Shown one piece after another: positions 1-63,331 of a DNA stretch of 64,000 nt (its first letter is position 1; the number at the start of each line of letters is the position of its first letter). The stretch spans positions 6,696,001 through 6,760,000 of the forward strand of contig OZ241830.1 of NCBI GenBank assembly GCA_965202585.1, in the 5' to 3' direction. Made by a program: the position numbers and the translations under genes. This DNA is from Thalia democratica. Lineage: Eukaryota. The notes under the pieces are model-generated. The model did not search any database and was not told the origin of the DNA. It saw only the letters and a list, made by a program, of their open reading frames with translations.

Positions 1-136
1 TCTTTTAAAAACATTTTAAATAAAATAAATGCTATTCGTATATAAATAGAAAAAAAATAACAACTATAAGAAACTTTGTTATAAAACTTATTCTTTGTAA
101 AAATAGATCAAATAAATTACATATAAACAAACAAAC

Positions 137-17034: not shown

Positions 17035-17697
17035 TCACATCGGCAGTCTGGGCTGACTGAACAGTCGCAACCTAGGAGGGCCCTGGACCATTATCATGGG
17101 CCTCATTTGCATATTTGGGGCCAGGTGCGTCCTGGCAGGCAGGTTCAGCATCTGGGGCCTGAAAATGAAGGGGGACTGCTGAGGCATCCTGATTATCTGA
17201 GGTTGCCTGGTAACCATCCTGATGTTCGGAGCTTTCAGGACCTGAGGTGGTTGTCTGGTGGTTGTCAAGATGTGGGGCCTGGTTGTCAGTATTTGTGGTC
17301 TTGTGGACAGCAACTGCGTCCTGGTGGTTAGCAACTGGGTGGCGTTGGTGACCACTTGGGCCGGTTGGGAGCTGATTATCGTGGGTTGGGATGAAGCAAC
17401 AAACTGCTGTGTTGTCACGACAACCCTTTTCTTTTTTGGCGGAGGTTCGGGTTTCTTGCTGCTGCCGCACACAGGCTGTGAGGTCAGTCCGGGCACGTAA
17501 GTGTTGTCCAAAACCTGCCCTTTCTCAAAAGCCCGCGTGGTCTTGTTGACCATCTCCTGGGCCTGCTCTTCCACCCACTGCTGGTAGTACAACCTGACGT
17601 TGTCACGGTGCCTCCTTCCCCCGCAGTGCGTCTTCCTGACGGAGGGCGAGTCGTGAGTGAGGTAGGTGTCGCAGTAGTCGCAGAAATATTTTGGCAT
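17035..17697 (-). CDS. SNRPC: U1 small nuclear ribonucleoprotein C (U1-C), single coding exon, 220 aa
   Basis: N-terminal matrin-type zinc finger [41 protein letters not shown] is nearly identical to the canonical U1-C start. C-terminus is Pro/Met/Gln-rich; codons are GC-rich. Confidence 0.97.
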
Positions 17698-24900: not shown

Positions 24901-26518
24901 ACCAATAATTGTCTAACATAGTTTTTTATCAGTACAAAGTATAACTTTTGCAGTCAAGAGTTCAAAAATGGCGAGTACTTAGGTATTAACATAGTTTAAT
25001 TATAAATTTAATGTTATGTTAAAATTCTTTTACATTCAATTAAGTATAACATAATTAGTAATACTTTACACCCACATTTAGATCTTTTTTACTTATTTCG
25101 CAGCTTAGTTTTTACAAATTAAATGCTAACTTCTATTAGTTTTCAAAACTATTTTTAATAAAAGCAAGCTGAACACATAGACTCGCATATAAATTAAAGT
25201 GTTCGTCTGCTGCATTTCGTTCAAACCTATTTTAAACTTAACTTTTAAAATAAGAAAAAGTTTAGATCATCAATTTTTCTTAATGTAACCCAAATTGTAG
25301 ACATGCCCTAGATGTATAGCAATATGTGTAAGGTTTAATAAGTAAAAATTTAAATTTATTCAGTTAATCATAGTTAGCTTAAATGCATTTGAGTTTTGCA
25401 CCAATATTATTACATTTTTGCTTTTCAGAGAAAATAAAAGTTTAGCTTTCCTGTAAGTAACTATTATATTTTTTAAACTTTATTTCATATTCATTTGTAG
25501 ATAGATTATAAAATTTATTTTAATCAATACCATAATAAGTTTTCTGAAGTTCCAAATCAAGTTTATAGAGCTTGCCATTTATTCACTGATGCAACTATAA
25601 AATACAATAGATAAAGATGTTCATAATTTAAAGCTTATTGAAATTGATACCAAAATTTAGCGATCACAACAGCCTTGTACTTAAGTGTCTTAGACAAAAG
25701 CTCAATATTTTATTACTCTAGTTATAATTTTATCATTCTTAAAATAATATAGAAGTACTATTAGTAATACTTGTGCTTACATAAACATTTATACTTAAAC
25801 TGTTAATTTTAAGCATAATAAATGGTGAAGTAGTTTTGTAAGGCAAGGCTCCTACAGTTAAATTTCTTAGTTTGAAATTTTATTTATCAGAAAACTATGT
25901 TAATATTTTTTGCTATTGTTGACTCATGCTGTTGAAATCAATCTTAGGTCTTTTTAGTTAACTTATCAACGTCGATATAACACTGAACCCTACTAAATAT
26001 AGAAATACTTATTTTATACGTTTTTAAGCTGACTGGAACTATAGTTAGTTTATACTTTGGTATAAGTTATGTTGTCATAAATAATACCTGATACTGTAAG
26101 TAATAAAACAGAAATTTATTAAAGAATAAACAAGATTAGAAATAAAGGAAAAAATAAAATAAATTAAAATATACTAGAAAATCGTAGAGAAACAACAAAA
26201 GAAAACAACAAGGAACAAAATATAAACATTGAGTGCACACCATTAGGTAGTAATTAAATTTTAGATTATGGGCATTTCAACCTAATAAACTTTTTAATAA
26301 TTTGTTTAAATTCTATGTACTAATTGGCTTCTATTGATCAAATATAATTAGTCTGAACACTTTTCACATGAAAACTGTTTTAAAGAACAAGATTCACGTC
26401 AGAAATTAGAATAAATAGTTTTGTAATATTTTATATAGGATACATAAGATAAGATATTCCAAATAAAGTTGTGCACAGCTGGTTGAAGCATCTAAAAAAC
26501 TTCATAGCATTTTATAAA

Positions 26519-29500
26519 TTAGTTCCTTCTTTTCCTCCTGCCCTCTCTGCGCTTCCTCCGGAGGCTCCTGTTGTTTTCAAGGCGCTGCCTCCACCTCTCC
26601 TCAGTTTCTCTCGGCTTCCTCCTCTTCCACGTCTGCCTCTTGTTCCTGCTGTTCCTCCACTTCTGCCACCTCGCGAACGACCATCCCTTCCTTATCTCCC
26701 GCAAACCTCTCCTCTTGGCCCTCCTTCTGTTCCTCCTCTCAACTCTCGCGTTCCGCTCTTCCGCCGTCTCGTTCTGCCTCGTCACCTTCAACGCGGCTCT
26801 TCTCTCGCTCCTCAGCTTTCGCTGCTTCACCCGCCACTGCTTCTTCTGCTGGTGGAGGCTCGGGTCCGAGGTGTCCAGCCCGCTGCTTTCGTCCGCGCTG
26901 TCCGAGCAGATGTCCACGTCCAATTCGGACTCAAGTTCGGATTCTGAGTCGTCTCCGGAGCTTTCCGAAAGTTCTTCTTCTGTACCGTCGTCATCTTCTT
27001 GCGAGGTGGCAACTGCGTCCCTCCTCAACTTTCTTCTGGTTATACGCGACCGTCCCCTCGCCGCAACTCTCAGCCTGCAGTGGTTTTCACTTTCGTTTTT
27101 CCTCCTGCCTCGCCACCTCCTTCTTCTGATAGCTATCCGGTGTCTCCTTCTCCACTGAACTATGTCCTCCCCTTTTCTCTTAAGCCTCAACTGTCTTCTC
27201 CTGTTCCGTCTCAAAGTTCTTTTATCAATCCTGGCCGTTCTTGCTTCTGCAGTTTCGTTTGCTCTGGCAAGTTTCAGTTCTGCTCTTCTCTGGCTTCTTA
27301 TTTCTCTTTTCTTCTTTCTATACTCTATAATATCTGCGTGCAAAGACGTGTCTGTGATGTCCAAACCACTGCTTTCATCATTACTGTTGGAGCAGATGTC
27401 AACATCGAAATCTGTTTCCAAATCGGTTCCACTGTAATCACTGTCTCCGCTTGAAGAACTTGACTCTTCAGTGATTTCGTCATCTCTCGCTATACCTCTT
27501 CTTCGTCTTCTGATTATTCTTCTGTTTCTGCGGCTCCTTCTCTTTCTTCGAAGACGACGCTTCCACTTTTTATCTGTCTCATTTCTCCTTCTACGCCTCC
27601 ATCTACGACGCCTCAATCTTCTTTTGTTTCTTCTTCTCCATTCTAATAATGAGCAACCTTTTCGTTTTAGTCTCAAGCTTCTTCTCTTTGTTCTTCTACG
27701 AGTCCTCCAAGCAATTCTGACTTTTCTTTCTTCTTCAGCTTCGTTTTTACGAGCAACTCCCAGTTTGATTCTTCGCTCGCTTCTTAGTTTTCTTTGTTTT
27801 GTTCTCCAGTCAATGATCTCTTTGTGAAGACTTGTATCTGTTATATCAAGTCCGCTGCTTTCATCGTTACTGTCAGAACAAATATCTACATCAAGATCTG
27901 TTTCCAATTCTGACTCGCTATCATAACAACTGTCTGAATCAGATTCGTCATCATTGAGACCTTCTCTGAAATTTCTCAACCTTGTTCTTCTGTTTCTGCG
28001 TTTGGTTCTTCTCTGCTTAATTCTCAACTTCCAGTGAGTTTCAGTTTCATTTTTCCTTATCAACCTCCATTTCCTTCTTCTCAGTATCTTGTTTTTGTTT
28101 CTTCTCCATTGAACAATCGTCTGTCCTTTCCTGGAAAGTCGCAGAGTTCTCCTCTTAGTCCTTCTAAGAGTTCTTTTATCAACTCTAACTGTTCTGACGT
28201 CAGCAGCTTCGTTTGTCCTGTCAACTTTCAACTTGGCTCTTCTTTCGCTCCTGGTTTTTCTCCTCAAGGTTCGCCAATCTTTGATTTCTTGATTGAGATT
28301 CGGATCATTGACGTCCAAACCACTGCTTTCGTCATTACTGTTGGAACAGATGTCAACATCAAAATCTGTTTCCAAATCGGTTCCACTGTAATCACTTTCT
28401 CCGCTTGAGCTTGAATAGTCAGTGATTTCGTCATCTTTAGCTAAACCTCTTCGTCTCCTTCTAATCAATCTTCTGTTTCTTCGACTTCTTCTCTTTCTTC
28501 GAAGACGACGTCTCCATTTTCTATCGGTCTCATTTCTCCTTTTTCGTCTCCATCTGCGACGCCTCAGTCTTATTCTATTTCTTCTTCTCCATTCTAACAA
28601 TGAGCAACCTTTTCGTTTTAGTCTCAAACTTCTTCTCTTTGTTCTTCTACGAGTCCTCCAGTCAATCCTGACTTTTCTTTCATCTTCAGCTTCGTTTTTA
28701 CGAACAATGCGTAGCTTAAATCTCCGCTCGCTTCTTAGTTTTCTTTGTTTTGTTCTCCAGTCTATGATTTCTTTATGAAGACTTGTGTCAGTTATGTCAA
28801 GTCCGCTGCTTTCATCGTTACTGTCAGAACAAATATCTACATCAAGATCTGTTTCCAGTTCAGACTCGCTATCATAACAACTGTCTGAATCAGATTCGTC
28901 ATCATTGAGACCTTCTCTAAAATTCCTCAACCTTGTTCTTTTGTTTCTGCGTTTGGTTCTTCTCTGCTCGATTCTCAACTTCCAGTGAGTTTCAGTTTCA
29001 TTTTTCCTTATCAACCTCCATTTTCGTCTTCTCAGTATCTTGTTTTTGTTTCTTCTCCATTGAACAATCGTCTGTCCTTTCCTAGAAAGTCGAAGTGTTC
29101 TTCTCTTAGTCCTTCTGAGAGTTCTTTTATCAACTCTAACTGTTCTGACGTCAGCAGCTTCGTTTGTCCTGTCAACTTTCAACTTGGCTCTTCTTTCGCT
29201 CCTAGTTTTTCTCCTCTGGGTTCGCCAATCTTTAATTTCTTGATTGAGATTCGGATCATTGATGTCCAAACCACTGCTTTCATCATTACTGTTGGAACAG
29301 ATGTCAACATCAAAGTCTGTTTCCAAATCGGATCCACTGTAGTCACTTTCTCCACTTGAGCTTGAACAGTCTGTGATTTCGTCATCTTTAGCCAAACCTG
29401 TCTTTCTCCTTTTAATCAATCTTCTGTTTCTGCGGTTTCTCCTTCTTACACGAAGACGACGCTTCCACTTTTTATTAGTTTCGTTTTTCCTTTTTCGTCT

Positions 29501-32500
29501 CCATCTACGACGCCTCAGTCTTCTACTATGTCTTCTCTTCCATTCTACTATTGAGCAACCTTTTCGTTTTAGTCTCAAGCTTCTTCTCTTAGTTCGTCTA
29601 CGAGTCCTCCAGGCTATTCTTACTTTTCTTTCATTTTCAGCTTCGTTTCTACGAACAATTCGTAGTTTAAATCTTCGCTCGCTTCTTAGTTTTCTTTGTT
29701 TTGTTCTCCAGTCAATGATCTCTTTATGAAGACTTGTATCAGTTATGTCAAGTCCACTGCTTTCATCATTACTGTCAGAACAAATATCTACATCAAGGTC
29801 TGTTTCCAGTTCAGACTCGCTATCATAACAGCTGTCTGAATCAGATTCGTCATCATTGAGGCCTTCTCTGAAATTTCTCAATCTTGTTCTTCTGTTTCTG
29901 CGTTTGGTTCTTCTCTGTTTAATTCTCAACTTCCAGTGAGTTTCAGTTTCATTTTTCCTTATCAACCTCCATTTTCGTCTTCTCAGTATCTTGTTTTTGA
30001 TTCTTCTCCATTGAACAATCGTCTGTCCTTTCCTAGAAAGTCGCAGAGTTCTCCTCTTAGTCCTTCTGAGAGTTCTTTTATCAACTCTAACTTTTCTGAC
30101 GTCAGCAGTTTCGTTTGTCCTGTCAACTTTCAACTTGGCTCTTCTTTCGCTCCTAGTTTTTCTCCTCTGGGTTCGCCAATCTTTGATTTCTTGATTGAGA
30201 TTCGGATCATTGATGTCCAAACCACTGCTTTCGTCATTACTATTGGAACAGATGTCAACATCAAAGTCTGTTTCCAAATCGGATCCACTGTAATCACTTT
30301 CTCCACTTGAGCTTGAACAGTCTGTGATTTCGTCATCTTTAGCCAAACCTGTCTTTCTCCTTTTAATTAATCTTCTGTTTCTGCGGTTTCTCCTTCTTAC
30401 ACGAAGACGACGCTTCCACTTTTTATTTGTTTCGTTTTTCCTTCTGAGTCTCCATTCACGTCGTTTTATTCTTCTACTATGTCTTCTCTTCCATTCTACT
30501 ATTGAGCAACCTTTTCGTTTTAGTCTCAAACTTCTTCTCTTAGTTCTTCTACGAGTCCTCCAGGTTATTCTTACTTTTCTTTCCTCTTCTATTTCGTTTC
30601 TACGAACAAATGTTAGTTTGAGTCTCCGCTCGCTTCTTAGTTTTCTTTGTTTTGTTCTCCAATCAATGATCTCTTTGTGAAGACTTGTATCAGTTATGTC
30701 AAGACCACTGCTTTCATCGTTACTGTTAGAACAAATATCTACATCAAGGTCTGTTTCTAATTCCGATTCTGTATCACAGTAAGAATCAGAGCCTGATTCG
30801 TCACTAAACTCTGCTCTAGCTTTCTTTTTCTTACGCCTTAGTCTCTTGTTCCTCCTCATGACCTGCTTTCTGTCTATTCTCTTCTTCCACTGTTCTTCAG
30901 TTTCGTTCTTACCTCTCTTTCGCCATGTCCTTCTAACTAACCTCTTATTTATACGTGTTCTCCATCTGGTAATACACTCACTTTTCCTTGAAACACGCAA
31001 CTGCTTTCGTTTAACTCGTCTGCGGTTTCTCCTGGTAATCCTAACACTTCTCTCACTTTCAGTTTCGTTTGTTCTCGTAGATTTAAGCTTCAACCTTCGC
31101 TCGCTTCTCATCTTCCTCTGCTTCACTCTCCACTCTCTAATTTCTTCATTCAAATTCTCATCTGAGATATCTAGTCCGCTGCTTTCGTCTGCGCTATCAG
31201 AGCAAATATCGACGTCCAAATCTGTTTCCAATTCAGATTCTGAGTAGTCGCTGTCTTCACTCGAGCTTGTTACATGTTCTGCGGTGAAATCTCCGATCTT
31301 TACGGTTTCTTTACTTACTGTCTTCTGTTGCCCTCTCGTGCTTGGTCCACACTTGCTCCTGCGATCCTTCCTCCTGTTGCTCAGCCTAAATCTCAACTCC
31401 ATATTCGTTTCATCATCCACCTTCACCTTCCAAGTTCTTCTCTTGGCCTGCCTCTCCCTTCTCGCCCAACAGAGCTTCGCTTCTTCCTCCTTCCTCTCTT
31501 CTCTCAGCTGCTTTCTCTTGTCTCTCCTCCTAGTTCGCCTGATCTTTCTCAGCTTCTCCTCTTCCTTGCTCTCGTTTTTGCGCGTAACAGCTAAGACTTT
31601 TCTCCTTTTAGAGCGAGTATTTCGTTTCTGAGTGCGGAACTCCTTCTCTGCACTGGTCAAGTTTTCATCATTAATATCCAAACCTTCGCTTTCGTCTTTA
31701 CTCTCCGAACAAATGTCCACGTCCAAGTCTGTTTCCAACTCCGACTCGCTGTTGTCGCTGTAGCTGCCGTCGGTTACCAAACCAGACATTCTCTTCACCT
31801 TCCTACGCCTCAACCTCTTGGTCCTGCGTTTGGTTCTCTTCTTCAAAAGTCTCAGCTTCCAACGCTTCTCAGTCTCGTTGGACCTCCTCAACTTCCAAGT
31901 TCGCCTTTTAACTCTCCTTTCCTTCCTAACTCTCCACTGCTCTATGGTTTCTGATTTTCTATTCTCCCTCAAAACTGTTCTCTTGCTCCTTCTAAGAGTT
32001 CTTCTTTGTATCCTCACATTTCGCTGTTCTTCTGTTTCAGTCTTCCTGACCGATATCAGCAGCTTTCTCCTCTCGGAACGACGCTTTCGCTCTTTGATTC
32101 TCCAATTTTTGACTTCCTCATCCAGACTCGCGTCTTCAATGTCGAGTCCCTCACTTTCGTCTGCGCTGTCGGAGCAGATATCCACGTCGAGATCAGTTTC
32201 AAGCTCGGACTCGCTGTGGTGAGAATCGCCGCTTGAGGAGCTCGACACGTCAGCAATGTCGTGTTCGTCGCCGAACAAATTGAACATAGCAACTCCGCGA
32301 CGATTGCTCATCCTCTTGTACCTCTGCTTGATCCTGTTCTTCTCTAGCCTGAGCTTCCAGTGGTTCTCGCTTTCATCCTCTCTCTGCAGCTTCCACTGCC
32401 GCCTTCTCAGCCTTCTCTTGTTCCTGACTCTCCACTGCACTATGGTCTGTCTGGTTCTCTGCACTCTCAAAACTCTTCTCTTTTGTCGTCTCAATGTTCT

Positions 32501-34330
32501 CCTCTTCACTCTCTCAGTTCTCTGTTCTGCAGTCTCACTTTTTCTGACGATCTTCAGCTTGGATCTTCGCTCGCTCCTCAACTTTCTCTGCTTGACTCTC
32601 CACTGCTTTATTTCGGCGTGCAAGCTTTCGTCGTCAACGTCCAAACCTTCGCTTTCATCCGCGCTGTCCGAGCAAATGTCCACGTCCAAATCGGTCTCCA
32701 GCTCGCATTCGCTGTGGTCGGAGTCCCCGCTGGAGCTCGACTCTGAGGTGATCTCGATGTCCTCGTCAAACTTCACTCCCGCAATCACCCCCTTCCTCCG
32801 CAGCCTCTTGTTCCGCTGGCTGATCCTCTTTATAGAGCATCTGAACTCCCACGCTCCCGAGTCCTCGTCGGTTCGGATCTCCTTCCAGTCGTGTCTCTTG
32901 TTCCTTCTTTCCAGCCTCGTCGTCCACTGCTCGATCGTGTCTCCCGCCTTCTGTCTCCTCAGCCGCACCTTCCTTCTCATCTCCCTCCTCGCGTTCCTTC
33001 TCTCGATCCTGATCTTGCGCTCTTCCTTCGTCTCATCCTCCCTCTCCTCTTTCAGCTTCAGCCTCCTTTCGCTCCTTTTGACCTTCTGCTGGTTTCTCCA
33101 CTCCCTTTTCTTCTCGTGCAAAGTTTTGTCTGACACGTCCAAACCCTCGCTCTCCTCTTGGCTGTTGGAGCAAATGTCCAGGTCGAGATCAGTTTCCAGC
33201 TCCGACTCCGTCCAGTTAGAATCTCCGGTTCCGCTTGAAGAGCCGTCGGTGTCCACGGATATGACCGTTTTTACGTCGGCTTCATCACCGTCTGTGGCGT
33301 CGCTATCACTTCCAAGTATAGATCTGCTTCTGTGGCTGGCCGTGTTGGAGATGCTGGTCGCTTCCTCGATCTTTTGGAGACGTTTAATTCTGCGTATACG
33401 GCGGATCTTCTTTCTCTTGACAATCCTGGTGTTCCATTGCTCTGTAGTTTCTTCACTTCTCTGCAAGTACCATTTTCTCTTCTCCGTAATTTCACTCGTT
33501 CTGGTTTTGAACTCCTGTACTGTTTCGCTTCTAAGAATTCTTATCTTCCTTCTTTCCGACCTTCTCATCGTTCTGATCTTGATTCTAAGAGATCTCTCTT
33601 CGGCTGTTTCCGTTTGACGCGTTACCGCCAGTTCTCTCCTTCTCTGACTTCTGGTCTTTCTAAGAGTCTTTCTCCATGTTCTCTGCTCTTCAGTTAAAGC
33701 TGCATCCGTGGTGTTTAAACCTTCGCTTTCATCGTTGCTGTTGGAGCAGATGTCATCATCTGTATCAACTTCTGGTTCAGATTCGTCTGAACTACTAGAT
33801 TCGTCTGAAGAAAGATCGTCAAAGATGCTTCGCTTGCTTTCTGTGGTTTCTTCCTCGACTTGGAGACGTTTAATTCTCCTTATGCGACGAATCTTCTTTC
33901 GCTCGGTGACTCTAGTCTTCCACTGCTCTGTGGTTTCCGTACTTCTTTGCAAGTACCACTTGCTTTTTGTCTCTATCTCGCTTGTTCTGGTTCTGAACTC
34001 TTGTATTGTTTCGCTTCTAAAAGTTCTTATCTTCCTTCTTTCAGACCTTCTCATGGTTCTAATCCTGATCCTGATGGATCTCTCTTCAGCTGTTTCGCTT
34101 TGACGCGTTATTGCAAGCTGTCTTCTTCGCTGGCTTCTGGTCTTTCTTACAGTCTTTCTCCACGTTCTCTGCTCTTCAGTGATCGTTTGATCAGTGATAT
34201 CGAGTCCTTCGCTTTCATCGTCGCTATTGGAGCAGATGTCATCGTCTGTATCGACCTCCGGATCTGATTCGTCACTACTTGATTCATCCGAGGAAAGATT
34301 GTCAAATATGCTCTGCTTGTTTTCGGTGGT
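26519..34330 (-). repeat. Coding tandem array of 16 modules (~155-170 aa each), each an acidic Ser/Asp/Glu block plus an Arg/Lys/Trp-rich block
   Basis: The motif D-I-C-S-x-S-x-(D/E)-E-S-(E/S)-G-L occurs 16 times in the 3535-aa ORF translation, each followed by a basic block. A 17th copy spans exons 9-10. Confidence 0.95.
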
Positions 34331-37300
34331 TTTACTGACGGTACTTTCTTGGTTGATGTTAGTTTCAGTTGTTGTTTGTTCAGTTGTCTGTTCAATTGTC
34401 TGTTCTGTTGTAATTTGTTCAGTTGTTGTCTGTTCTGTTGTTTCAGTTGTTGTTTGTTCTGTTGTCTGTTCAGTTGTCTGTTCTGTTGTTTCAGTTGTTT
34501 GTTCAGTTGTGGTTTGTTCTGTTGTTTCAGTAGTTGTCTGTTCTGTTGTTTGTTCTGTTGTCTGTTCTGTTGTTTCAGTTGTTTGTTCAGTTGTATGTTC
34601 TGTTCTTTCAGTTGTTGTCTGTTCTGTGGTTTGTTCAGTTGTTTGTTCTGTTGTTTCAGTAGTTGTTTGTTCTGTTGTCTGTTCAGTTGTGGTTTGTTCA
34701 GTTGTTTCAGTTGTTGTTTGTTCTGTTGTCTGTTCAGTTGTTGTCTGCTCTGTTGTTTCAGTTGTTGTTTGTTCAGATGTCTGTTCTGTGGTCTGTTCTG
34801 TTGTTTCAGTTGTTGTTTGTTCAGTTGTCTGTTCTGTTGTTTCAGTAGTTGTTTGTTCTGTGGTTTGTTCAGTTGTTTGTTCTGTTGTTTCAGTAGTTGT
34901 TTGTTCTGTTGTCTGTTCTGTGATTTGTTCAGTTGTCTGTTCTGTTGTTTCAGTTGTTGTTTGTTCTGTTGTTTCAGTTGTTGTTTGTTCAGTTGTCTGT
35001 TCTGTTGTTTCAGTTGTAGTTTGTTCTGTTGTTTCAGTTGTTGTCTGTTCTGTTGTTTCAGTTGTTGTTTGTTCAGTTGTCTGTTCTGTGGTCTGTTCAG
35101 TTGTGGTTTGTTCTGTTGTTTCAGTTGTTGTTTGTTCTGTTGTTTCAGTTGTTGTCTGCTCTGTTGTTTCAGTTGATGTTTGTTCAGTTGTCTGTTCTGT
35201 TGTTTCAGTAGTTGTTTGTTCTGTTGTCTGTTCTGTTGTGGTTTGTTCAGTTGTTTGTTCTGTGGTTTGTTCAGTTGTTTGTTCTGTTGTTTCAGTTGTT
35301 GTTTGTTCTGTTGTTTCAGTTGTTGTTTGTTCTGTTGTCTGTTCTGTTGTGGTTTGTTCAGTTGTTTCAGTTGTTTGTTCTGTGGTTTGTTCAGTTGTTT
35401 GTTCTGTTGTTTCAGTTGTTGTTTGTTCTGTTGTTTCAGTTGTTGTTTGTTCTGTTGTCTGTTCTGTGGTCTGTTCAGTTGTTGTTTGTTCAGTTGTCTG
35501 CTCTGTTGTTTGTTCAGTTGTCTGTTCTGTTGTTTCAGTTGTGGTTTGTTCAGTTGTTGTTTGTTCAGTTGTTGTTTGTTCTGTTGTCTGTTCTGTGATT
35601 TTTTCAGTTGTCTGTTCTGTTGTTTCAGTAGTTGTTTGTTCTGTTGTCTGTTCAGTTGTCTGTTCTGTTGTTTCAGTTGATGTTTGTTCAGTTGTCTGTT
35701 CTGTTGTTTCAGTTGTGGTTTGTTCAGTTGTTGTTTGTTCAGTTGTTGTTTGTTCAGTTGTTTCAGTTGTTGTTTGTTCTGTGGTCTGTTCTGTTGTTTG
35801 TTCAGTTGTCTGTTCTGTTGTTTCAGTTGTTGTCTGTTCTGTTGTTTCAGTTGTTGTTTGTTCAGTTGTCTCTTCTGTGGTTTGTTCAGTTGTTGTTTGT
35901 TCAGTTGTTTGTCCTGTTGTCTGTTCTGTTGTTTCAGTTGTTGTTTGTTCAGTTGTTTGTTCTGTTGTTTCAGTTGTGGTTTGTTCAGTTGTTGTTTGTT
36001 CAGTTGTTGTTTTTTCAGTTGTCTGTTCTGTTGTTTGTTCAGTTGTCTGTTCTGTTGTTTCAGTTGTTGTTTGTTCAGTTGTCTGTTCTGTTGTTTCAGT
36101 TGTTGTTTGTTCAGTTGTCTCTTCTGTGGTTTGTTCAGTTGTTGTTTGTTCAGTTGTTTGTCCTGTTGTCTGTTCTGTTGTTTCAGTTGTTGTTTGTTCA
36201 GTTGTTTGTTCTGTTGTTTCAGTTGTGGTTTGTTCAGTTGTTGTTTGTTCTGTTGTTTGTTCTGTTGTCTGTTCAGTTGTTGTTTGTTCTGTTGTTTGTT
36301 CTGTTGTTTCAGTTGTGGTTTGTTCAGTTGTCTGTTCAGTTGTTGTTTGTTCTGTTGTTGTTTGTTCTGTTGTCTGTTCAGTTGTTTGTTCTGTTGTTTC
36401 AGTTGTTGTTTGTTCAGTTGTGGTTTGTTCAGTTGTCTGTGATTCAGTTTGTTCAGTAATTGTTTTTGTTTCAAATTGTTTTGATATTTGATTAGAAGCA
36501 TCAGATTGGTGATATGCAGTCTGTTTAGAAACATTTGTGCTAGATTGCTGGAAAGTTTGATCACTGAACGAAACTTGCTTCTGCTGCTGACCCTCAAACC
36601 CGATCGCTTTGAAGTTGTAAACATCGCTCTGCCTGATCAACGCCCCGCACCCGCCAATTCTGTGTCTCATAGTCTTGCTCTTGGAACACTTGTACTTGGA
36701 ATAAGCTCCGCAGCTCAGATTCAACCCGGTGCTCTGCTGGATCTCGTTCCTCCTGATCATCCTCCGCACCAGCTTCTCCTGCCTCCTCAGCATCTTCGAC
36801 ATCGACCTCTCTCTCCTCTGCACCCTCCTCAACCTCCTGCTGTGGAACCTCTCCCTCTTCTCTCCGCACCTCACCTTCCTCTCGTGACGAGTCTCGTTCA
36901 CGTTTCTTTCTGTTCTCGCCACCAGCTTCCTGTCTTCTCTCGCTTGCCTCCTTCCAAGCTTCTCCTGCCTGCTCGTCTGCTTCATTTCAATCCTCAACTT
37001 GTTCCTCGCTTCCCTCTCTGCTCTTCTCTGTGCTTTTAGCGCTTTCCTCTCTGCCTTGTAATCGCTCGTCTTTTTCAACCTTGTTTGCTTTTCTTCCTCA
37101 GTTTCGTTTGCGATCACTTCTTTCATTATGCTGAGCTGTAAAATGATAATACGTTTTGAATAAGGTTTTTAAGTTTTTTACATATTTTATATAAACACAG
37201 TAAATTATTTTTTTCATCCTCTTTTTTCGAAAACAGATTTTTTTTCATGTTAAGTGGTGTTGTTAATTATAAGTTATTAATTCAAAAATTCTCGTATAAA

Positions 37301-40300
37301 ATAAATTTTTTACTCAGCTAATTATTGAGATCCTCATTTACTTTATTGTTTTCTTAATTAGCTCAACATATCAACCTACCTGTTTGAAATAATTCTTTTC
37401 TTCCCTCATTCTCACCACTCTCTCGTATTCTGTCTCGTTTTTCATCACTTCTCTCACTTCCCTCCTCCTCTCTCGTCTTGCACTTCTCCTTGCAATTCTC
37501 ACTCGCCTGTCTTCCGCAGATTCGGTGCTTCTCTGTTGCGTCAGCTCATCTCTTCTCTTTGATCTTTCCTTCTTCTTTGCCATGCGTAAAGTTTTCGTTT
37601 CAACGCTTATTGCCTCCTGGAAAATGTGTTTGCTACGTTTGATTTTCTTAGAAGATATTTTTATCATAACGTGCATTACGTCTCTTTGTATAAGTAGCTT
37701 TCAAGTTTAAAAAGTAATTAGAAATTAAGCGCAGGTATCTAGTTTTGATTAGACTTGAAGTGTTTTGTCAATAAGTTTTGAAACTATATGTTATTCAAAA
37801 AAAAAACTCCAAACAACATTTCTTAATAAACTTAACACACAAACTTGTAGGTAATCATGGTAACTGTTTTGATGTTCATACGAATTATTTTTAGTATTCT
37901 AAAGACAAATAAAACTTATAAAAATACTAATAGGACATATAATCTTGTAAAACAAATACATGTTGTAAAAACAAGCTTATAAATTAATTAATAATTGTGA
38001 TCTAAAATGTCCTAAATCTGTCTAACTGGATTTTTTATACCAGCTTAAAATTTTAATATTTTAGTTCAAAATCTATACTTTAAGTAGCTTTTTAAACATA
38101 AGCTTTGTAAATATATACACTTCAACACCCACTAATTTAAAATACTATGATCATACTTGCTTAGACCTTCAAATAAATTAGAAATATTAGCTGATATTTT
38201 TATGAAGTTTTCTATAAATTTAATTTTTTTGCTTAAGACCTAAATTATGATAATAAATAAACTAAAAACTTCTAAAAGAAAATAGTTGTAACAATGTTGT
38301 CAAGTAGCAATCGCAATTAGTTTAATGATGTTTGTTAAAATTGAAAAATAAAAACTTAACTTTTAGAAATAACTTTCTCATTTAAATATTCTATATACAA
38401 GATGTGACATACTTTAAAGCGAAATTGAAGTTCCATGTTTAATTAAAGTTCAAAAGTTTGTACTATTTTAGTAAATGTTTGTTTATTTAACAGGTTCCTG
38501 ATTTAAACATGGCTTGAGATGTTAAACTCACACAGCAAATTTTTCAAAATATAATGAAACATAATACTGTGTTACTCTATTCCCACCATAGTATGTTTCA
38601 TTTTTTCAAACTGAATGAATTTATATCTATATTGTTGTATCAGTATGAAAGGAATTTTTTTTCTCCTAGCTTTATAAATAAAAAAAACGTGATGAAGTTT
38701 GGCTCTTTGATCAGCTAGGTTTATCAATGTTTTTAATAATAAGTTTGTAATTATTTAAAATTTTGTATACTATATTTTTTTAATGACAGCTCAAAAAGTT
38801 CGGTCGAACGACCTAGTATACAAAAAACCCTTCAGTTAGCGATCATACAGCTAATTTCAAATCTGTACTATGTTTGTTTATACAAATTTTTACTTAGATA
38901 TAAGTTATCTATGTTTAGTTTTTGTTGATAAATTAACTAACAGTTCTAAAGGTAATTTTTTAGTAGATGTTTTCTTGATAAACATAGTTTAATCTAAAAT
39001 AATGAACTCTAAAATACGATGCCGTGTAAAAAACTTTAAAATAAAAAATGAATTCAAAGATTTTTGTCCTAGACCTAAAAGTGTAAGTTGTAAAACTTAT
39101 TTCACGGCGTTTTAAAACTTTAAATTTTGCTAGAGTTTTTTTAAATAGTTAATACCATTTCGTTTATTAATGCAGCATTGTATATGTTAAGAAAAAGCTT
39201 TATGTAATCAAAACAAGTATTAGTTTAAAAACAAAACTAATTATGAAGTCATAGCATTAACTCATCAACCACAAGTTCTGTCTGTTTTGGTTTTTTATTA
39301 ACAACTAATTTGCCTTGTTTATCATAAGTTACTTAATTAAGTATAAGTTAATTTAATAAAGTTACTTTATAAGTATTTTTTCTTACAACGAGTTTTACAA
39401 CATTTGATAACTTTAAAATATTTAGCATTTAATACCAACTTAAATTCTAGGTTTATGTCATATGAATAGTTTTAACAAAAACAACTTAATATTAATTTTG
39501 AGGACATACTCAAAAGTTATAAAATAACTAATATCACATACTACAAAATTTGAAATTAATTATTATTTTAATAATTAAAATCAATTATACTTTCAAAAAC
39601 AACCTATGTGCGTTACCTAAGTCACTTTGCTTAAGAAACAAAAAATAGGTTTTCCTGAACTAATGCTAATTTAAAAACTTTATAAAACACTTTAAAATTT
39701 TCATAACTTTTATTAGAAAATGTTGAGCTAATTTTTATCTACTAAAGACTAAACTTAAGTTTTATACACTTCTATGACAGAATATTTATACAGTTATTTA
39801 AAGTACTTATGAATTTTTTTATTTTCTCAAATCTTAAAATTAGATTAAGATGTTATTTACTCATAACTAAATCTGATTTTTACTTCTTAGGATTAAATTG
39901 TTTTTGAATTTCAAAAAATACCAATTTAACACGAATTCATAGCCAAATTTATTCTTACATGGCAAAAAAAAGTATAGTTTTATTGCAAAATGTAACTTGA
40001 GTTTCAAAGCAGAATATTTAGAAATAAAGCAAGCTTATGTTCAGCTGTCTTTAAACTTAATACTTATCAAAAAAAAAATAATAAATATTATTAACAATTC
40101 ACCTCATCAACATTACACCCTTCGCTCTCGTCCTCACTGTTACTGCAAACATCATCGTCAGTTTCACTGTAACAATCAGACTCTCCGCTAGACGATGACG
40201 AAGAGAAGTCAGTGCTTGAAGTTGACGATGAGGAAGAGGTTGAAGATGATGACGAAGACTGAGATGAGGATTGAGAGCAGTGAAACGACGAAGATGAAGA

Positions 40301-43300
40301 AGATCTCCTCAGTCTTCGGGTGAAACTGTTTAAGTTTTATATTACGACAAGATAATAAACTAGTCTTTCATTAGATCCTAAAACAAACTACATATGACCG
40401 AGAGACTGATAAGTTTTAGAAATTTTAGTCTTGCCTCGCTACTTAGAAATTGTAAAAACTTTTTACAAGAACATTTCTACTTCCTCAACTCAGCAAATTA
40501 GCTCCATTTTTTAGATAGTCTTATACTAAAGCATTTTAAAAAAACTACACTTAAAAATCATTACACGAAAATAGCATTTAAGCATTTAAAAGTTTGTTGA
40601 AAAATTATAAAGAAATTTAATTTGTTTGTTACCCATTTATGGAACGACTACTAACCTGCTAGTTTCAGTAACTATAAGGTTTCTGTACTCTGATATTTCC
40701 CGATCCAGGGAAATTTTAATGTAGTTAAGCTTTTGAAATCTTACTAAAAATTCGCTCAAACTCTGCCTGGATTTAGTCAGCTGTAATCTCAACGATTCCA
40801 TTTCCTTGTAATCATATTCGTTTGTTGATTCCAGTCGAAGTTCGAGTTCTGAGATGTGCTTTTCAAGAGCCAGTTTCTGTTAAAAGTAAAAATTACTGTA
40901 AATGGTCTAAAACCATACATTAGTATTAACTCTGTTCTAAAAATTAATAAGCTAAGAAACTATTACATTTCAACAAGTTGCTTTCATTATAGTTTTGTAT
41001 TTAACTAACATCATTTCCAACGTGTCAAATAAGTGCAGCTATATCGTAAAAACAGTTGTTTATGTTAAAGTATTTTTACAAACCTTTTCTCTGAGTGGGC
41101 TCAGTTCAATTTCGATTTTGTCCAATTCGTCTTGTTTTTCTGAATTTTTCCCTTGCATCACTTCTAACTTCAATTGCAACGTTTCCAAGTGCTTCGTCAG
41201 GAAACTTACCTTCAGATTTAAATTGGAAATTTAATACAGTAGTAATTATGTGTGATATTTGAAAACGAATTAATTCATCTATAAACAATTGATAAGAAGT
41301 ACTTAAATAAGCATAATAGTTTCTCTAACTTAAAAATGCTAATTCCTAAAAAGCTAAAAATAGATCGTATTAAATTTAGTAGAACTTCCAGTTTGTTTTA
41401 TACTATTATTAGATAAATTTTAGTGCTATATAATAACATATTTTGTATGAAGTTTATCCTACGTGATTTATTAAAATCTTTTATATCTAAAAAGGGATTT
41501 CAAACCTTTTTCTTGTAGTATTTGTCAAGTTCGTTGAGATATTTAGCATTAAAAGTTTCGTATTCCCTTCTTATATTAGCAATTGATTCTTGTAAGTAAG
41601 GAGCCATAGAAGGTCTGACACCTTCCCAGATCGATGCACATTCACAAGTTAGTTCTTCTCTCAGGGTTTCGATTTCCTTTGATAAGTTAACAAGAAATAA
41701 TAACTGCTGTAATCATTTAAGTATGTATTTGCGCTATTAAAATTATTTTTACTTTTAATTAGTTACTTGCTATAGTAACAAAAAAGTTCAAACATTCTCA
41801 AAGTGGCATTTATCAAAAATAAAAGTTTTACAGCTATTTCTGCAAAACAATGTTAGTAAACAGTAATATTTTAATACTCTTGCATAAAATTTTTAGTTCT
41901 TTTTTAATTTAACTATTAGTAGATAATTTATTTTCTTGCTTTTAAAATTTTTAAAAATAGGTTGCTTTTAAAAAACCGTTTTAAAGTGCTTTTTCTGAGA
42001 AAGTTTTTCAAGTTAAAGGTATAATTTTAAATATTACCTGAAAAATAGAAACTTTTAGTTCACAGTATACAAAAATTATGTCTTTTTAATTTTTATAAAA
42101 ACTAACAGTTCTGTGAATTTCTTTTTCTTTTCCGATTTGAATTTCTAAATTTGCAATTCTTGTTTTAAATTCGTCTGCATCAATAACTGCTGCATCACTA
42201 TCCTAAAAATTTTTGAAACCATTTAACACTAATATAGTTTAAAATGTTATGCGTTTTACTTCTTAGTAAACAAATAAAGAGATTTCAACTAATAGAATAA
42301 AAATATAATATTTATTCTTTCAAGACTTTATTATACAATTAAGTTTCGGTCAAAGACCTTGTCAGTGCTGAGAAAAAATCTAAAAAGATATTTAACAGCA
42401 ATGAAGAATTGTATTTAAACAATTAGATAAAAATAAATTTTTACTTTAAACAAATTAAAATTAATCTTAAGAATAAATTTATGGTAAAGTTTAAATTTTA
42501 GTTTCGAATTTTTTTCAGGACTTTTATATGCAAACTAAGTTTCTTGTCTCGAAACTTTACCATAAATTTATCCTTAAGATTAAAATAAAAGTTGTTTTGT
42601 TTTTTTGCAAAGATTAATTTTTATTCAGTTGTTTAAACACTATTTTCCATTGTCACATATCGTTTTATATTTTTATATAAGCACTGACGGTGTCTTTGAT
42701 CGAAAATAAGTTTGCATAACAAATTTTTAAAAGAATAATATAGTTTTAGTTGTATCAAAATTGTGAATAAAAAGTTGATAGATATAAAATCAAAAATGTC
42801 AAACTGTTTTTATTACAGTTTAAGGTTACAAAGACTAAAAAAGTTATTTAACTTGAATAGAAATATTTTTTATTATTTTTAGGCTAAACATTAAGTAGTA
42901 AACTAAACCTTTGTAAGTCTATCTATTTCTCGTTTGTAAACTAGAGTCCTGTTCTTCAAAGTTCCAATTCTGAAATTATTTTCATTAAAAAAGTGTAATT
43001 TAAAAGTACTAGTCATAAGAAAGCAATACATATATATATATAAATAATAACACTGAGTAAAACTTAAGAGTTATTTCCAAACACTACAACAAACTAATAT
43101 TTTAACAAAAAGTACTTTTGAAGAATTTCTTTGACTTTGTAATCTTTATTATCTCTATCGATTTGAACTTCACTATTCAGAACTTCGAGTTCAGTTAGTT
43201 TGTTGCGCAGATTCTAAAAATAGATAAAAAGTTATACTTTTTATTTTAAGTTTGTGCTTATGGCTATCTAAAAAGATCTACAGTTTTACTTTTTGTACCT

Positions 43301-44581
43301 TGTAAGCACACATTTGTAGTTGAGTTGAAAAAATCGAAAACTTTAATCAAGTTTAGATTTTTTGTACTTTTTAGCTTTGAATTCATTTCCAAAATTTAAA
43401 CTTTTTACACAAACTCAAATTTAAATCGTGTTTGTAAATATATTTTACTAGTTTCAAATTTTTTATTCTCTAGTTTCAAACTTAACTTAACATGTTAATT
43501 TATAAGCTTTCAAAGACTTACTTTTAAGTTTTTCAGTAAATTAATTATATACATATTTCATATGTTGTTAAACTTGGAGTTTAAATGGTTTTATAAAAAC
43601 TCACTTTCAAATCATCCTTATAAATTGAGTAAAAATCTAGTTCCAAAGGTCCTTTGCTGCACTGTTTATAAAGTTTCTTGTTTTCGGCCGTCAACTTTTT
43701 TATCATCAGTTTAAGTTCGTGAACTTTGTCAATGTAAGTTGCTAGTGAGCAGTTTAAAGTTTGTAATTGTTCCCTACCTCCTACCTCTATAGTCCTAAAA
43801 GTTTTGATTAAACTAAACAACCAGTTAAATTTCTCAAATACTTTTAACATTTTTCATCATCAATGTAGTGATAAAATAATATTATTGTAAGATGTCAAAC
43901 TTACATTTAATTATAAATAGTATAAACTTATAATTTCTATTCAGTTAAAACATTTATTTGTAATAAAATAAGTAAAATATTTTAAAGTTAGAGTTTATAA
44001 GTCTAAAGTTTTAAGTTGTATCTTCTAACCAGTATCTATTTCGGCCATCATCAATAAAGTTGAGATGTTCGCGCCATCAATAATAAATAATTAATTTCAA
44101 CCAAACAACCAACAACAGCATCCGAATTTATGGAATTAGTCCTAATAAGGACGAAACCGGTCGTAGGTTGCCTCGGATGCTGTTGTTGTTGATCGTGTGG
44201 TGAAGTTAATTATTTATTATTAAGTTGATTCTTTCTAAGTCTTTATTTCGTATAGGGTTCCATAAACACAAAGTTTTGTATATAAGTTAAATAATAGTAA
44301 ACTGCTACTTGATTGCCTAAAAAACTTTATGTAGATACTGAATAGATTAAAAACAGTTATGACGTAACATACCCGCCAATAGTGGCGTCAAATTCCTCGA
44401 CGGAGTAAGTCCTGTAACTGGACGTTCTCGCTTGGAGTTGTGTTGTGGTTGCCATGGTAACTTCCTCCTGGTTGCTATGGAGTATGTCCCTGTTGCTAGG
44501 GAGCACCTCCCCACCTCCGACCCAGTAGCAGGTCGCCTCCGAGTCGGAGGAGTAGCTGTCTGAGCTGGAAGAAGATGACAT
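26519..44581 (-). CDS. Giant cytoplasmic intermediate filament protein (~4,082 aa): head, IF rod, ~3,700-aa repetitive polyampholyte tail
   Basis: 11 GT-AG exons with consistent phases: 44581-44373 (209 nt), 43794-43605 (190), 43213-43116 (98), 42969-42909 (61), 42202-42107 (96), 41676-41506 (171), 41209-41084 (126), 40876-40656 (221), 40325-40103 (223), 37616-37380 (237), 37135-26519 (10,617); total 12,249 nt. IF hallmarks: EQLQTLNCSLATYIDKV (coil 1A), LQESIANIRREYE (coil 2 start), IKISLDREISEYRNLI (rod end). Exon 9 already encodes the tail repeat motif (ETDDDVCSNSEDESEG). Confidence 0.85.
34362..36440 (-). repeat. Coding low-complexity repeat (TTEQ/TTTEQ/TTTET)n, ~690 codons
   Basis: Mixed 12- and 15-nt units (e.g. 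ACAACTGAACAA, ACAACAGAACAG), visible directly; open in frame within the giant exon. Confidence 0.97.
44076..44229 (+). ncRNA. Decayed minimal (Penelope/retrozyme-type) hammerhead ribozyme motif inside a ~50-bp-arm hairpin
   Basis: Stem II GTCC-TAATAA-GGAC (44139-44152), then GAAAC-CG-GTC (44153-44162). Stem I candidate TTTAT/GTAGG, with exactly 7 nt between stems I and II but reading GGAATTA instead of CTGANGA. Outer arms 44076-44125 and 44173-44229 are inverted repeats. Confidence 0.55.
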
Positions 44582-47500
44582 AAATGTCTAAACTACCAGC
44601 TGTATTGAAAATTGAATCGTTTGAATTTAATATGATATATATTTATACACCATATTACGTATGTCTATCACACAAACTTTGATAGTCTATCAGGATTTCT
44701 CAAACTAATTTTCAAAATTGCCTCCTTGCTAAAAATTTTAAAAATATTAGTTCTTATTTATTCGATATTGTCCTTTTACTACTTTATTACCATTTACTAT
44801 TTTTAGTCGCCGTACGCATTTGATAATATGGTCCTGGGATATTTTGATCGTTTTTTTGTCGTTCAATAGAAAAACAGTAATAAAAATAACGACAACCTTA
44901 ATTGCCCCTAAAGGAGTAAATAATATATAGCGGTATTTATTGTCTAAAACTCAACTGTAACTGTCAAGAATTGATTTACAAAAATGTAGGTATTAAGCTT
45001 TAAGCAGATACAAATTATTGAAATTTTTTTATGTGATAAATATTTACCGAGAACTTAAACTAATTTTGAATTTAAAAAGAATCATTTAGTAAGTACTTAG
45101 TTAATTATATTGGTTTTTGAACTATTTTTGGTTTTGTAGTTTAAGATTTTTTGAGTACATACTTTTGTTCGTAAATGTTGTAGTTATACAAGTTTAAATG
45201 TTTTGTATAGTTTATGTAAAGTTACTCCATCTGCTAAACAGAATTTATTGTTGTTTGTAAAACTTTTTTAATTAATAGTTTAATAAAACTTAAACAAAGC
45301 TTAATGTTTTATATTGCTCGATATGAAACTCGTACTATATAAATTGTTTAAAAATGTTTCAAGTCAAGGGATGCTTACTTTTTATTATTTACATTACAGT
45401 ATCTAATAAATTTAAAACTGAATTGAACATAACAATTGTCCAAAACTAGCAATAGTTTAAACATTTCTAAACATCAACGTATTTTGAAAAATTTAAAGCT
45501 TTGAATTCTTATATTGTTTTCAAATATAATTTACTTGTTGTGTTTTTAAACTAAAAACTAAAATAACCGATGTTTGATAAGTAAAATTTTTGTATAATTT
45601 GAAATTGAAAGTTTTTTTTGCGTGTATGAAACTATAATTTTAAAACACGTATATAAAAATGTATGCTTTATAAACTTAATTTTATCTGAATTTGACAAAT
45701 ATATTTTGCTATAAATACTTCATACAAGTTATAAACATACATTCTGAATATTTTACCCATTTCTAGAAAGCTTTATTTAAAGCTTTTTTTTGTAATTAAT
45801 TAAAAGAAAAAAGGTAACATGATAAATCTTATAGGAAGATTTCCTAATTTTTAAAACTCATTTACACCTATGAGTGGCTGTTTTGTAAAATACTTAACGA
45901 TAAATTATCTTACAATAAAAGATTAAATCAAAATTTCTAAACTGTAATTATAAAATCTAGTTTCATAGCAAGTTTGTAATAAGAAAACATTCTTTTTAGT
46001 TGATTTTATGACATTAAACTGTCGTTTTAGTTTTACTTATAATTTTAAGTAACGAAAAAAGCTTTGAAACGAAGTAACTTATCTTATACAATTAAAAAAA
46101 GTACTATAAAAACTTTAGTAAACTAAATTTTAAAGAAACTGCTTAAACAAACTCTCAGAATCTTTATAACTATTTTGAAGTGATTTTAAAACTGAAAAAT
46201 AAAAATTGCCTATTTTATTTTTTAATCTATTATAGAGTTGATAACAACTTAGCTAATCAAAGTTAAAACTTTCAACTTAAGTTTTGGTTGTTTAAGTTAT
46301 TTCACCAAGTAAAGTTTGTTTTTAAATGTTATTACTGTTAATCTAATCTTGATTCCACCATAAGAATACAATCTAACAACTAAAAAAAAAACTAGTCAAT
46401 CTACTTTGTCTACGCTAACTTTTTTGCTGTAGTTTGACTAAATACAGTGTAACTGTACTGTTTGTATATGATATAGACTAACTAAAAGTTTCAATTAAGT
46501 GAGTGGGCTCTTACTAATACATGAAATTCTCATACTCATGCATTACAAGTAAACAATAACAAATCTGTATTGCATTACTGCTTTGTAGTGTAATGAATTA
46601 CTGTTTTTTATAAATTTAAAAAAGTTATTGGTTTAAGCTTTAAAATTACAACTGTTAATCCAATTGTTTACAGTCTTTTTGTTTAAAAAAGACTAATAAA
46701 AAAACAAATCTTTGTATTTTAGTAGTAAATTTTAAGAATTATAATTTATAATATGGTTTAGATTCAACTTATTTACAACTGGTTTTAGTAAAGTAAAAGA
46801 AACAAGTTAAAAGTTATGGCTGCTACAAAATGAAAAACCAGGTATTAAATTTTCATTAACTTAATTTTAATTAACATTATTTTCGAGTGCATTAAAAGCA
46901 TATTTATACTTTTATAATTTTAATTTTTTTACCTAAAATTAGTCTGTTTGTTTTTAGCTAACACTAGCGTTTTCAAAACGTTAAAATTAAAAAGCAAATT
47001 TAAAATTCATGTACATATATTAAAAAAGTTTTTAAAACTAATAAAAAGGTTAAAAAATGATAACTTGAACAATAAATTTAAAAAAAAGAACTATATATCA
47101 AAATCTTTCGAAATTTGATTTGTTTAGACTTTGAAACTAGGTTCTACAAAAAAAAATTATTAAGATTTAAGTTCTATCAGACAATGCACTAATATTTCAA
47201 TGAACAAACGTGCTTGTAGATAACTAATTATAGAATGTTTCCTGTTGAAAAACTGCTAGACTAAACAGCGGTGAGATAGACTTAACAGTGTTTTGATAAA
47301 ATTTTAAAAACTATTTTTGGTTTAATACTAACGTAAAACTTATACTTCAAATTAGTTTTCCTAATTTAATTTCAGTAACTTTAATTTTAATCGAACATAA
47401 TCATTCTTATATAACCCAAATACTCAAGCCTCACAAAATTATCTTTATATCAAAAGCACAATAAATGTTGCTTTATGCATTAAACAGATCGATTGCAACA

Positions 47501-57555: not shown

Positions 57556-63331
<5,776 letters not shown>

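Follow-up and report, generated by a model that had tools for sequence, protein, structure and literature searches.

The tails of intermediate-filament (IF) proteins are the least understood part of these molecules, yet they decide filament spacing, bundling and partner binding. The tail of NF-H has about 600 amino acids (aa), nestin and synemin carry tails of about 1,200-1,300 aa that are acidic or heptad-like, and the nucleolar proteins Nopp140 and treacle, which have LisH/SRP40 domains, have acidic, CK2-type Ser clusters that alternate with disordered basic parts rich in Lys, Ala and Pro. The tails of neurofilaments form a charged brush to which roles in network formation (PMC11626179) and in setting filament spacing (PMC11626179, PMC2120120) are ascribed, and trichohyalin is an Arg-rich, helical protein that associates with keratin filaments (PMC2114164, PMC2119783). 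Here we describe an array of 17 modules, each made of an acidic Ser-rich block and a basic Arg/Trp-rich block, on the minus strand of a 64,000-nucleotide (nt) stretch of the Thalia democratica genome (assembly GCA_965202585.1, contig OZ241830.1, positions 6,696,001 to 6,760,000; hereafter the window, from whose first letter all positions are counted). The modules very probably form the C-terminal tail of one cytoplasmic-type IF protein of about 4,082 aa, in the order Ser-rich head, 312-aa rod, module 0, short Cys/Gly stretch, Thr/Glu/Gln repeat of about 705 aa and 16 further modules.

Eleven predicted exons joining an intermediate-filament rod to the modules

We enumerated GT-AG sites around every open piece on the minus strand, and eleven exons could be joined through such sites into one open frame of 12,249 nt, encoding a predicted protein of 4,082 aa (about 488 kDa, pI 9.8) that ends in ..RRKRRN. 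To our knowledge this would be the longest IF protein, and a full-text literature search for 'giant intermediate filament' returned nothing. For the rod exons a single splice combination keeps the frame open. Exons 9 and 10 have a few alternative acceptors, among which 40325 and 37616 were chosen because they have the best polypyrimidine context and reproduce homologous mRNAs. The splice phases of exon 9 match those of exons 8 and 10, P0011 (a transcript fragment from a relative) crosses the join between exons 9 and 10, and exon 10 is colinear with residues 463-541 of P0012, the metatranscriptome homolog described below.

The eight exons upstream of the tail (40656-44581) encode an IF head and the 312-aa rod. 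The Pfam Filament profile (PF00038) matched three pieces of this region colinearly: 43584-43853 (profile positions 3-55, 29.9 bits), 41503-41712 (positions 140-198, 19.6 bits) and 40640-40879 (positions 240-311, 27.9 bits). Each match is below the 40-bit cut-off, and their sum is 77 bits. Both rod-end motifs are found in the spliced model, LNCSLATYIDKVHEL in coil 1A and LDREISEYRNLI at the end of coil 2B, the IF consensus forms being LNxxLAxYIDKV and LDxEIxxYRxLI, respectively.

The tail that follows is 3,694 aa long. Most of it lies in a minus-strand open reading frame (ORF) of 3,535 aa (26519..37126), in which the motif D[DVL]DICS occurs 16 times, once per 155-192 aa. The GC content at 26-38 kb is 37-50%, against 21-29% in nearly all other 2-kb bins of the window. 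A seventeenth copy, module 0, is split by an intron and has a DDD(V/I)CS core in a poly-Ser acidic block, with its acidic block (..ETDDDVCSNSEDESEG..) in the open piece 40094-40336 and its basic block in the open piece 37374-37700 (exon 10) and the start of the large exon. A sequence-only reading, made earlier from the letters of this DNA, had therefore been correct in counting seventeen modules with a period of about 160 aa and the motif at 26519-40325, where 40325 is the acceptor of exon 9; it had overlooked the IF head and rod, which extend the gene upstream to 44581, and with them the tail context. Between the proximal Lys/Arg (K/R)-helix part of the tail, whose layout is the same in two paralogs, and the distal modules lies the Thr/Glu/Gln repeat (56% T, 24% E, 18% Q), with a net charge of -165. 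At 34147-36624 its TTEQ-coding 12-nt unit also opens other frames on both strands (825, 765 and 275 aa), which we consider by-products and not genes. A transposon or retro-element origin and a secreted mucin reading of the Thr-rich region were both rejected, as domains of these kinds are absent and the context offers no signal peptide, an IF head and rod lying upstream.

Module anatomy, predicted fold and selection

Cut at the motif anchors, the 16 modules of the large exon gave a near-gapless alignment with a mean column identity of 53% and an overall identity between modules of 39-56%. Twelve positions are invariant in the 23-residue acidic core (E27, D31, D33, I34, C35, S36, S38, E41, S42, G44, L45 and D49), and about 18 further invariant positions, mostly Arg, plus W128, lie in the basic part of the same alignment. 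The acidic block spans about 50 aa, with a net charge of -8 to -21, 10-17 Ser/Thr (25 in module 0) and 4-10 S/T-x-x-D/E sites. The basic block spans 105-119 aa, with a net charge of +19 to +49, 27-46 Arg and 2-6 Trp. These values bear out the sequence-only reading in describing a block polyampholyte whose acidic blocks are rich in CK2-type sites and hold one invariant Cys (C35, unvarying across the 16 aligned modules), and the basic run that it quoted, WRRRNKRRLRRRRWRRRRRNET, is found in module 14. Modules 8-14 belong to two types in alternation and so make up an A/B super-repeat of about 317 aa. The module period of about 480 nt escaped Tandem Repeats Finder, because the copies are too diverged as DNA; the array was demonstrated at the protein level.

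Structure prediction with AlphaFold2 (AF2) on the 16-module alignment returned residues 1-50 as disordered, with a per-residue confidence (pLDDT) of 31-53, followed by four helices at 54-79, 83-108, 112-125 and 137-160. Modelled alone from 20 sequences, the basic block again gave four helices (pLDDT 94.1; predicted TM-score 0.54), which are predicted to be amphipathic with conserved Trp/Ile/Leu. The block had been called protamine-like; it is Arg-rich, yet its predicted four-helix structure (pLDDT 94) argues that it is not a disordered protamine-like stretch. Its two halves align with each other (hhalign E 1.7e-4, probability 50%), and the pattern suggests two helix-NET-helix units in which 'NET..E' resembles a helix N-cap.

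We found no known family or fold for either the module or its helical Arg/Trp domain. Foldseek against the PDB gave 0 matches for the whole-module model and 1 for the basic-block model at E <= 10, AFDB clusters gave nothing below E 1, and the ESM Atlas gave unrelated structures by shape (TM-score <= 0.51) and no usable match by features. In the VIA wide fold search the best score was Z 5.0, to generic helical hairpins that included ribosomal proteins, and likenesses at Z <= 5 are noise for helical models. Pfam, run on all pieces, returned nothing above cut-off, with zf-HIT and TLP-20 at noise level. The nearest candidate, YL1 (PF05764), scored 28.0 bits (E 2.9e-6) where its gathering cut-off is 29.2, and did so in a single third of the array (another piece scored 12.9); it was rejected as a match best explained by composition. 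The module profile, described below, found this IF family only. The possibility, foreseen in the sequence-only reading, that the module belongs to a known domain family with another function is thus not borne out, because no such family is matched.

To compare constraint along the module, region-wise divergence was computed among ten diverged modules, in which synonymous sites are saturated (proportion of synonymous differences, pS, about 0.8-0.98). The proportion of nonsynonymous differences (pN) was 0.147 in the acidic core (pN/pS 0.16), 0.40 in the Ser stretch preceding it (pN/pS 0.41) and 0.34 in the first 55 aa of the basic block (pN/pS 0.40), which agrees with the earlier proposal that the core is far better conserved than the rest and is selected, not drifting. 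Invariant residues are encoded by differing codons across modules, and the ratio of nonsynonymous to synonymous rates (dN/dS) in the young A/B copies is 0.08-0.28. The only two runs that contain this DNA, present as short-read unitigs of one sample, confirm the sequence piecewise, without spanning the array. The unitigs differ from the reference by about 2.7%, as in an 814-nt unitig covering modules 5-6 with 22 differences. Of the 40 read-versus-reference differences listed, 28 are synonymous. Based on the pN/pS by region, the dN/dS of the young copies and the mostly synonymous read differences, both the core and the basic block are under purifying selection, the core more strongly. At 30678-31953, unitigs of the second run (X2, from the same sample as X1) are about 2.7% off the assembly, mostly by transitions; a divergence of this size suggests high heterozygosity or a second haplotype.

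Relatives, origin of the array and features of the window

A profile built from the 16 modules was searched against 1.84 billion representative proteins and matched 14, all of this IF family, eleven of them short fragments. The four fragments whose source was looked up (P0001, P0002, P0005 and P0011) come from one Tara Oceans metatranscriptome run. Individual fragments map to specific modules: P0011 to module 0 (67% identity), P0008 to modules 3-4 (79%), P0003 to modules 6-7 (70%) and P0004 to modules 9-10 (83%). The array is therefore older than the species split, and the relative transcribes an ortholog in which the modules stand in the same order and are kept one by one. In P0001 and P0007 of this related species, exactly the acidic core (39 aa, or 19-21 aa) is missing at some modules, the gaps aligning to window modules 4, 10 and 13 (about 32600-32720, 29740-29800 and 28300-28360). 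Either splicing of exitrons or an artefact of assembly could account for them; such in-frame GT..AG pairs as the window contains here are weak and are expected by chance in Ser/Glu codons.

P0012, from a metatranscriptome contig of 2,654 nt, is an intron-free ORF of 820 aa that encodes a complete IF protein. It has a head, a rod and, just after the rod, one module and no more (..DDDVCSRSEDE.., followed by basic helices); a Cys/Gly/Arg- and Asn-rich end comes last. Its alignment with exons 2-11 of the window gene is colinear, and its precomputed annotation includes PF00038. Searching the 802-Mb assembly of T. democratica with P0012 revealed two shorter paralogs on another contig (L017 and L018, contig C5, near 59.58 Mb and 32.68 Mb), each with one diverged module and, as in the window gene, a tail of three exons (acidic, basic and last). 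Their acidic exons end in ..DDDICS.S.DEG.SC.ENE, and L017 carries five NQTTETTT units in the place that the 705-aa TTEQ repeat takes in the window gene. A version of the acidic core is retained in both paralogs and in P0012 and P0015. All array modules score best against the gene's own module 0 and lower against the module of either paralog, and modules 1-2 are nearest to module 0. Copies found in the genome with an A/B module pair are confined to this ORF; the view that the module is unique to this gene was nevertheless rejected, as each paralog carries one diverged copy.

Because the paralogs have a single module with the same exon layout, the module is an ancestral tail element of a small IF subfamily that was amplified 16-fold only in this gene, a descent from one element common to two paralogs that had been missed when the array itself was recognized. 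The locus is a natural extreme, with a tail element that is single in two paralogs and present here in 17 copies under purifying selection, and the copy series of 1, 1 and 17 offers a ready-made dose series for the function of the tail module. Relatives of the tail outside this lineage were not found with the 1.84-billion-protein profile, with a module-profile search of metagenome contigs (no confirmed relative) or with the tail region of P0012, which returned P0012 and P0015 alone.

Among the closest homologs of the rod are three transcripts of relatives (P0017, P0019 and P0020; 745-785 aa) that combine an IF domain with an annexin-repeat tail (PF00038 and PF00191). Possible counterparts in the same genome lie at G000:C4:52535204-52540381, C1:62086369-62093867 and C6:76692549-76692803, and we know of no described IF-annexin fusion. 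The features of the window are collected in the table. The two genes flanking the IF gene at the ends of the window have no evident link to it, and an Rfam scan of 26000-45500 gave no family at gathering score.

Table. Positions, strands and supporting details of the exons, tail regions, modules and neighbouring genes in the window.
Feature	Position	Strand	Details
Exon 1: start codon (ATG at 44581) and Ser-rich IF head	44373..44581	-	Donor CGG/gtatgt after 44373
Exon 2: coil 1A, ..LNCSLATYIDKVHEL..	43605..43794	-	Filament profile; 58% identical to P0012 residues 64-125
Exons 3-8: remaining rod, ending ..LDREISEYRNLI..	40656..43213 (43116-43213, 42909-42969, 42107-42202, 41506-41676, 41084-41209, 40656-40876)	-	Filament profile; colinear tblastn of P0012; unique open splice
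Exon 9: poly-Ser and acidic core of module 0 (..ETDDDVCSNSEDESEG..)	40103..40325	-	Acceptor ttaaacag/T; donor GAG/gtgaat
Exon 10: first basic helices of module 0	37380..37616	-	Acceptor ttttccag/G; donor CAG/gtaggt; phase 0 at both ends
Exon 11: about 3,538 codons in one open frame, up to the stop codon	26519..37135	-	Acceptor cattttacag/CTC at 37135; phase 0
Proximal basic K/R helices, then short Cys/Gly-containing stretch; ancestral tail	36482..37135	-	P0012 residues 542-700, E 3.7e-18
Thr/Glu/Gln repeat (TTEQ/TTTE), about 705 aa	34367..36481	-	12-nt tandem repeat, 166 copies
Modules 1-16, with an acidic Ser/DICS block and then a four-helix Arg/Trp block in each	26522..34336	-	Boundaries of modules 1-16: 33851, 33275, 32777, 32279, 31814, 31307, 30836, 30353, 29885, 29402, 28934, 28451, 27983, 27497, 27011, 26522
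Modules 8-14: A/B super-repeat, youngest copies	27497..30835	-	dS 0.1-0.7; dN/dS 0.08-0.28
Apparently intronless, GC-richer ORF	17038-17724	-	U1 snRNP C-type zinc finger; Thr/Gln/Pro-rich repetitive C-terminal part
Downstream neighbour: multi-exon Lys/Glu-rich coiled-coil protein	35-3700	-	
Upstream neighbour: NAD-isocitrate-dehydrogenase-like exons	59075-61753	+	

Possible function and comparison with known systems

On the model of neurofilament side-arms (PMC11626179) and of Arg-rich matrix proteins that associate with IFs (PMC2114164, PMC2119783), the tails may cross-bridge filaments through their charge, possibly tuned by phosphorylation. This mechanism, taken for itself, is put forward tentatively; to the reading that combines it with the IF-tail identity we assign a probability of roughly 0.5. 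The rods would assemble into 10-nm filaments from which the tails point outward, and the Thr/Glu/Gln repeat would act as a long, acidic, extended spacer. Each of the 16 distal modules would then present two blocks, one acidic, Ser-rich and disordered, the other helical with Arg and Trp. Acidic and basic blocks would pair electrostatically within and between tails, so that filaments would cross-bridge into bundles or a gel, as if the filament subunit itself carried a matrix function like that of filaggrin or trichohyalin. With its 10-17 Ser/Thr phosphorylated, an acidic block would come near the basic block in charge, which would make the attraction tunable and a switch plausible, and the invariant core (ELETDLDVDICS-S-DES-GLD) could be a specific contact or modification site. 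Given the IF-tail context, bundling is the most natural among the functions suggested in the sequence-only reading, which also put forward, as inference, coacervation, a CK2-type phosphorylation switch, cross-linking or metal binding by the Cys, and nucleic-acid binding.

Several observations weigh against cross-bridging by the tails or against the gene model beneath it. The net charge of the tail is +184 and that of the module region +317, so that tails might repel each other unless phosphorylated or provided with a polyanion. AF2 left the acidic block undocked from the helices, and a complex prediction of acidic against basic block (module 10) gave 0.00, a value that we list here and use in neither direction. 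No RNA runs are on record for this species, and the joins between exons 8, 9, 10 and 11 rest on splice signals, frame and homologous mRNAs.

The strong positive charge also fits an alternative that we consider unlikely, in which the helical Arg/Trp blocks would bind RNA, DNA, acidic lipids, sulfated glycans or tubulin tails, the acidic blocks would act as built-in competitors (autoinhibitors), and the filament would be a multivalent platform, for example for ribonucleoprotein storage or membrane attachment. The charge of the basic blocks (+19 to +49 in about 110 aa), their 27-46 Arg and their conserved Trp, the +317 of the module region and predicted structured helices with a very basic surface would all suit such a scaffold, as would the weak fold matches, mostly generic helical hairpins with ribosomal proteins among them. 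However, no nucleic-acid-binding domain or fold was returned by Pfam, Foldseek, AFDB clusters, VIA wide or the ESM Atlas (fold Z <= 5), and an invariant acidic core beside every basic block would be needless for a pure polyanion binder.

Somewhat less likely again is a platform of short linear motifs, in which the 23-residue core, repeated 17 times, would recruit or be processed by one specific partner and the helices would be spacers. The core may resemble a phospho-regulated strand of the SUMO-interaction type (alternating L-D-V-D-I, then a Ser/acid run), a caspase-type site like IDVD/V of vimentin, or a DxDxD-type Ca2+/metal site with the invariant Cys, but these assignments are putative, and the core misfits canonical SUMO-interaction patterns, which need two adjacent hydrophobic residues. 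The motif platform would account for the core being the slowest-evolving part (pN 0.147 against 0.34-0.40), for its 12 invariant positions in modules that are 39-56% identical overall, and for its presence in both paralogs and P0012/P0015. The basic block, with about 18 invariant positions, is nonetheless also under purifying selection and has a confidently predicted structure, which argues that it is more than a spacer. Were the modules to bind RNA or a specific partner, they would represent a new way to use a filament as a multivalent scaffold.

That the large ORF is a gene separate from the IF rod, or a runaway coding repeat without function, is very improbable: the lack of RNA records for this species, the ability of repeats to expand neutrally and the relative's transcript fragments without acidic cores would allow it, but the exons agree in splice phase, the order of rod, acidic exon, basic exon and last exon recurs in homologous mRNAs and in two paralogs, a 3,535-codon open frame is beyond chance in a 23% GC background, purifying selection is seen both between modules and in read differences, and a second species has kept the modules one for one.

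Cross-bridging by an IF tail remains our preferred reading, and one extension of it is more speculative. It is doubtful, though conceivable, that this is a self-cross-linking IF whose subunit carries its own matrix, the acidic Ser/DICS blocks and helical Arg/Trp domains of the sixteen distal modules, on their spacer of about 700 aa, zipping neighbouring filaments into a gel that kinases and phosphatases, and perhaps redox at the invariant Cys, could switch. If a self-cross-linking IF were real, a gelatinous planktonic animal would have a tunable, protein-only mechanical network, and the module and its helical Arg/Trp domain would be new protein families. With a disordered acidic block, a confidently predicted helical domain and no match to a known family or fold, the module is a clean model for patterned charge driving the assembly of a structural polymer.

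Compared to described proteins, the window protein shares features with several and matches none in full. As in trichohyalin and filaggrin, its repeats are in tandem, Arg-rich and highly charged; those are separate proteins with an N-terminal S100 EF-hand, whereas the array here is fused to a filament subunit, and Pfam gave no EF-hand or S100 match in head, rod or tail pieces. The modules show the same alternation of acidic Ser and basic segments as Nopp140 and treacle, but here the array hangs on an IF rod, the basic part is helical and of the Arg/Trp type, and no LisH or SRP40 match was obtained by Pfam in any piece scanned at E up to 1. The N-terminal region of YL1/VPS72 (PF05764), the sole near-threshold Pfam family, likewise has an acidic and then a basic stretch. 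In contrast to nuclear lamins, the 312-aa rod is of the short type, without the additional 42 residues in coil 1B, and there is neither a Pfam lamin-tail domain in the tail nor a CaaX at the C-terminus. A short rod of this chordate type and the open-ocean origin of the homologs suit a pelagic tunicate.

The closest likenesses are to long-tailed IF proteins. As in neurofilament M/H (type IV IF), a long tail that has many phospho-acceptor Ser and oppositely charged blocks extends from an IF rod. The window protein differs in having no Lys-Ser-Pro (KSP) repeats (0 KSP, 1 SP and 13 Pro in 4,082 aa) and in building its tail, at 3,694 aa against about 600 aa in NF-H, from discrete 160-aa modules with a predicted helical basic domain; the Pfam scan and the module profile search detected no sequence similarity to neurofilament M/H. 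Like nestin and synemin, which no homology search matched, it has a short IF rod and then a very long repetitive tail, but this tail is about three times longer, net basic and made of a module unknown elsewhere. As far as we know, a subunit of about 488 kDa is far larger than nestin, synemin or NF-H. By its rod, the protein is a member of the IF family, and it lacks the hallmarks of lamins, type IV neurofilament proteins, S100-fused proteins, Nopp140/treacle and YL1. Together, these comparisons suggest that it would work most like a long-tailed IF protein such as NF-H/M or nestin, with a tail about three times longer.

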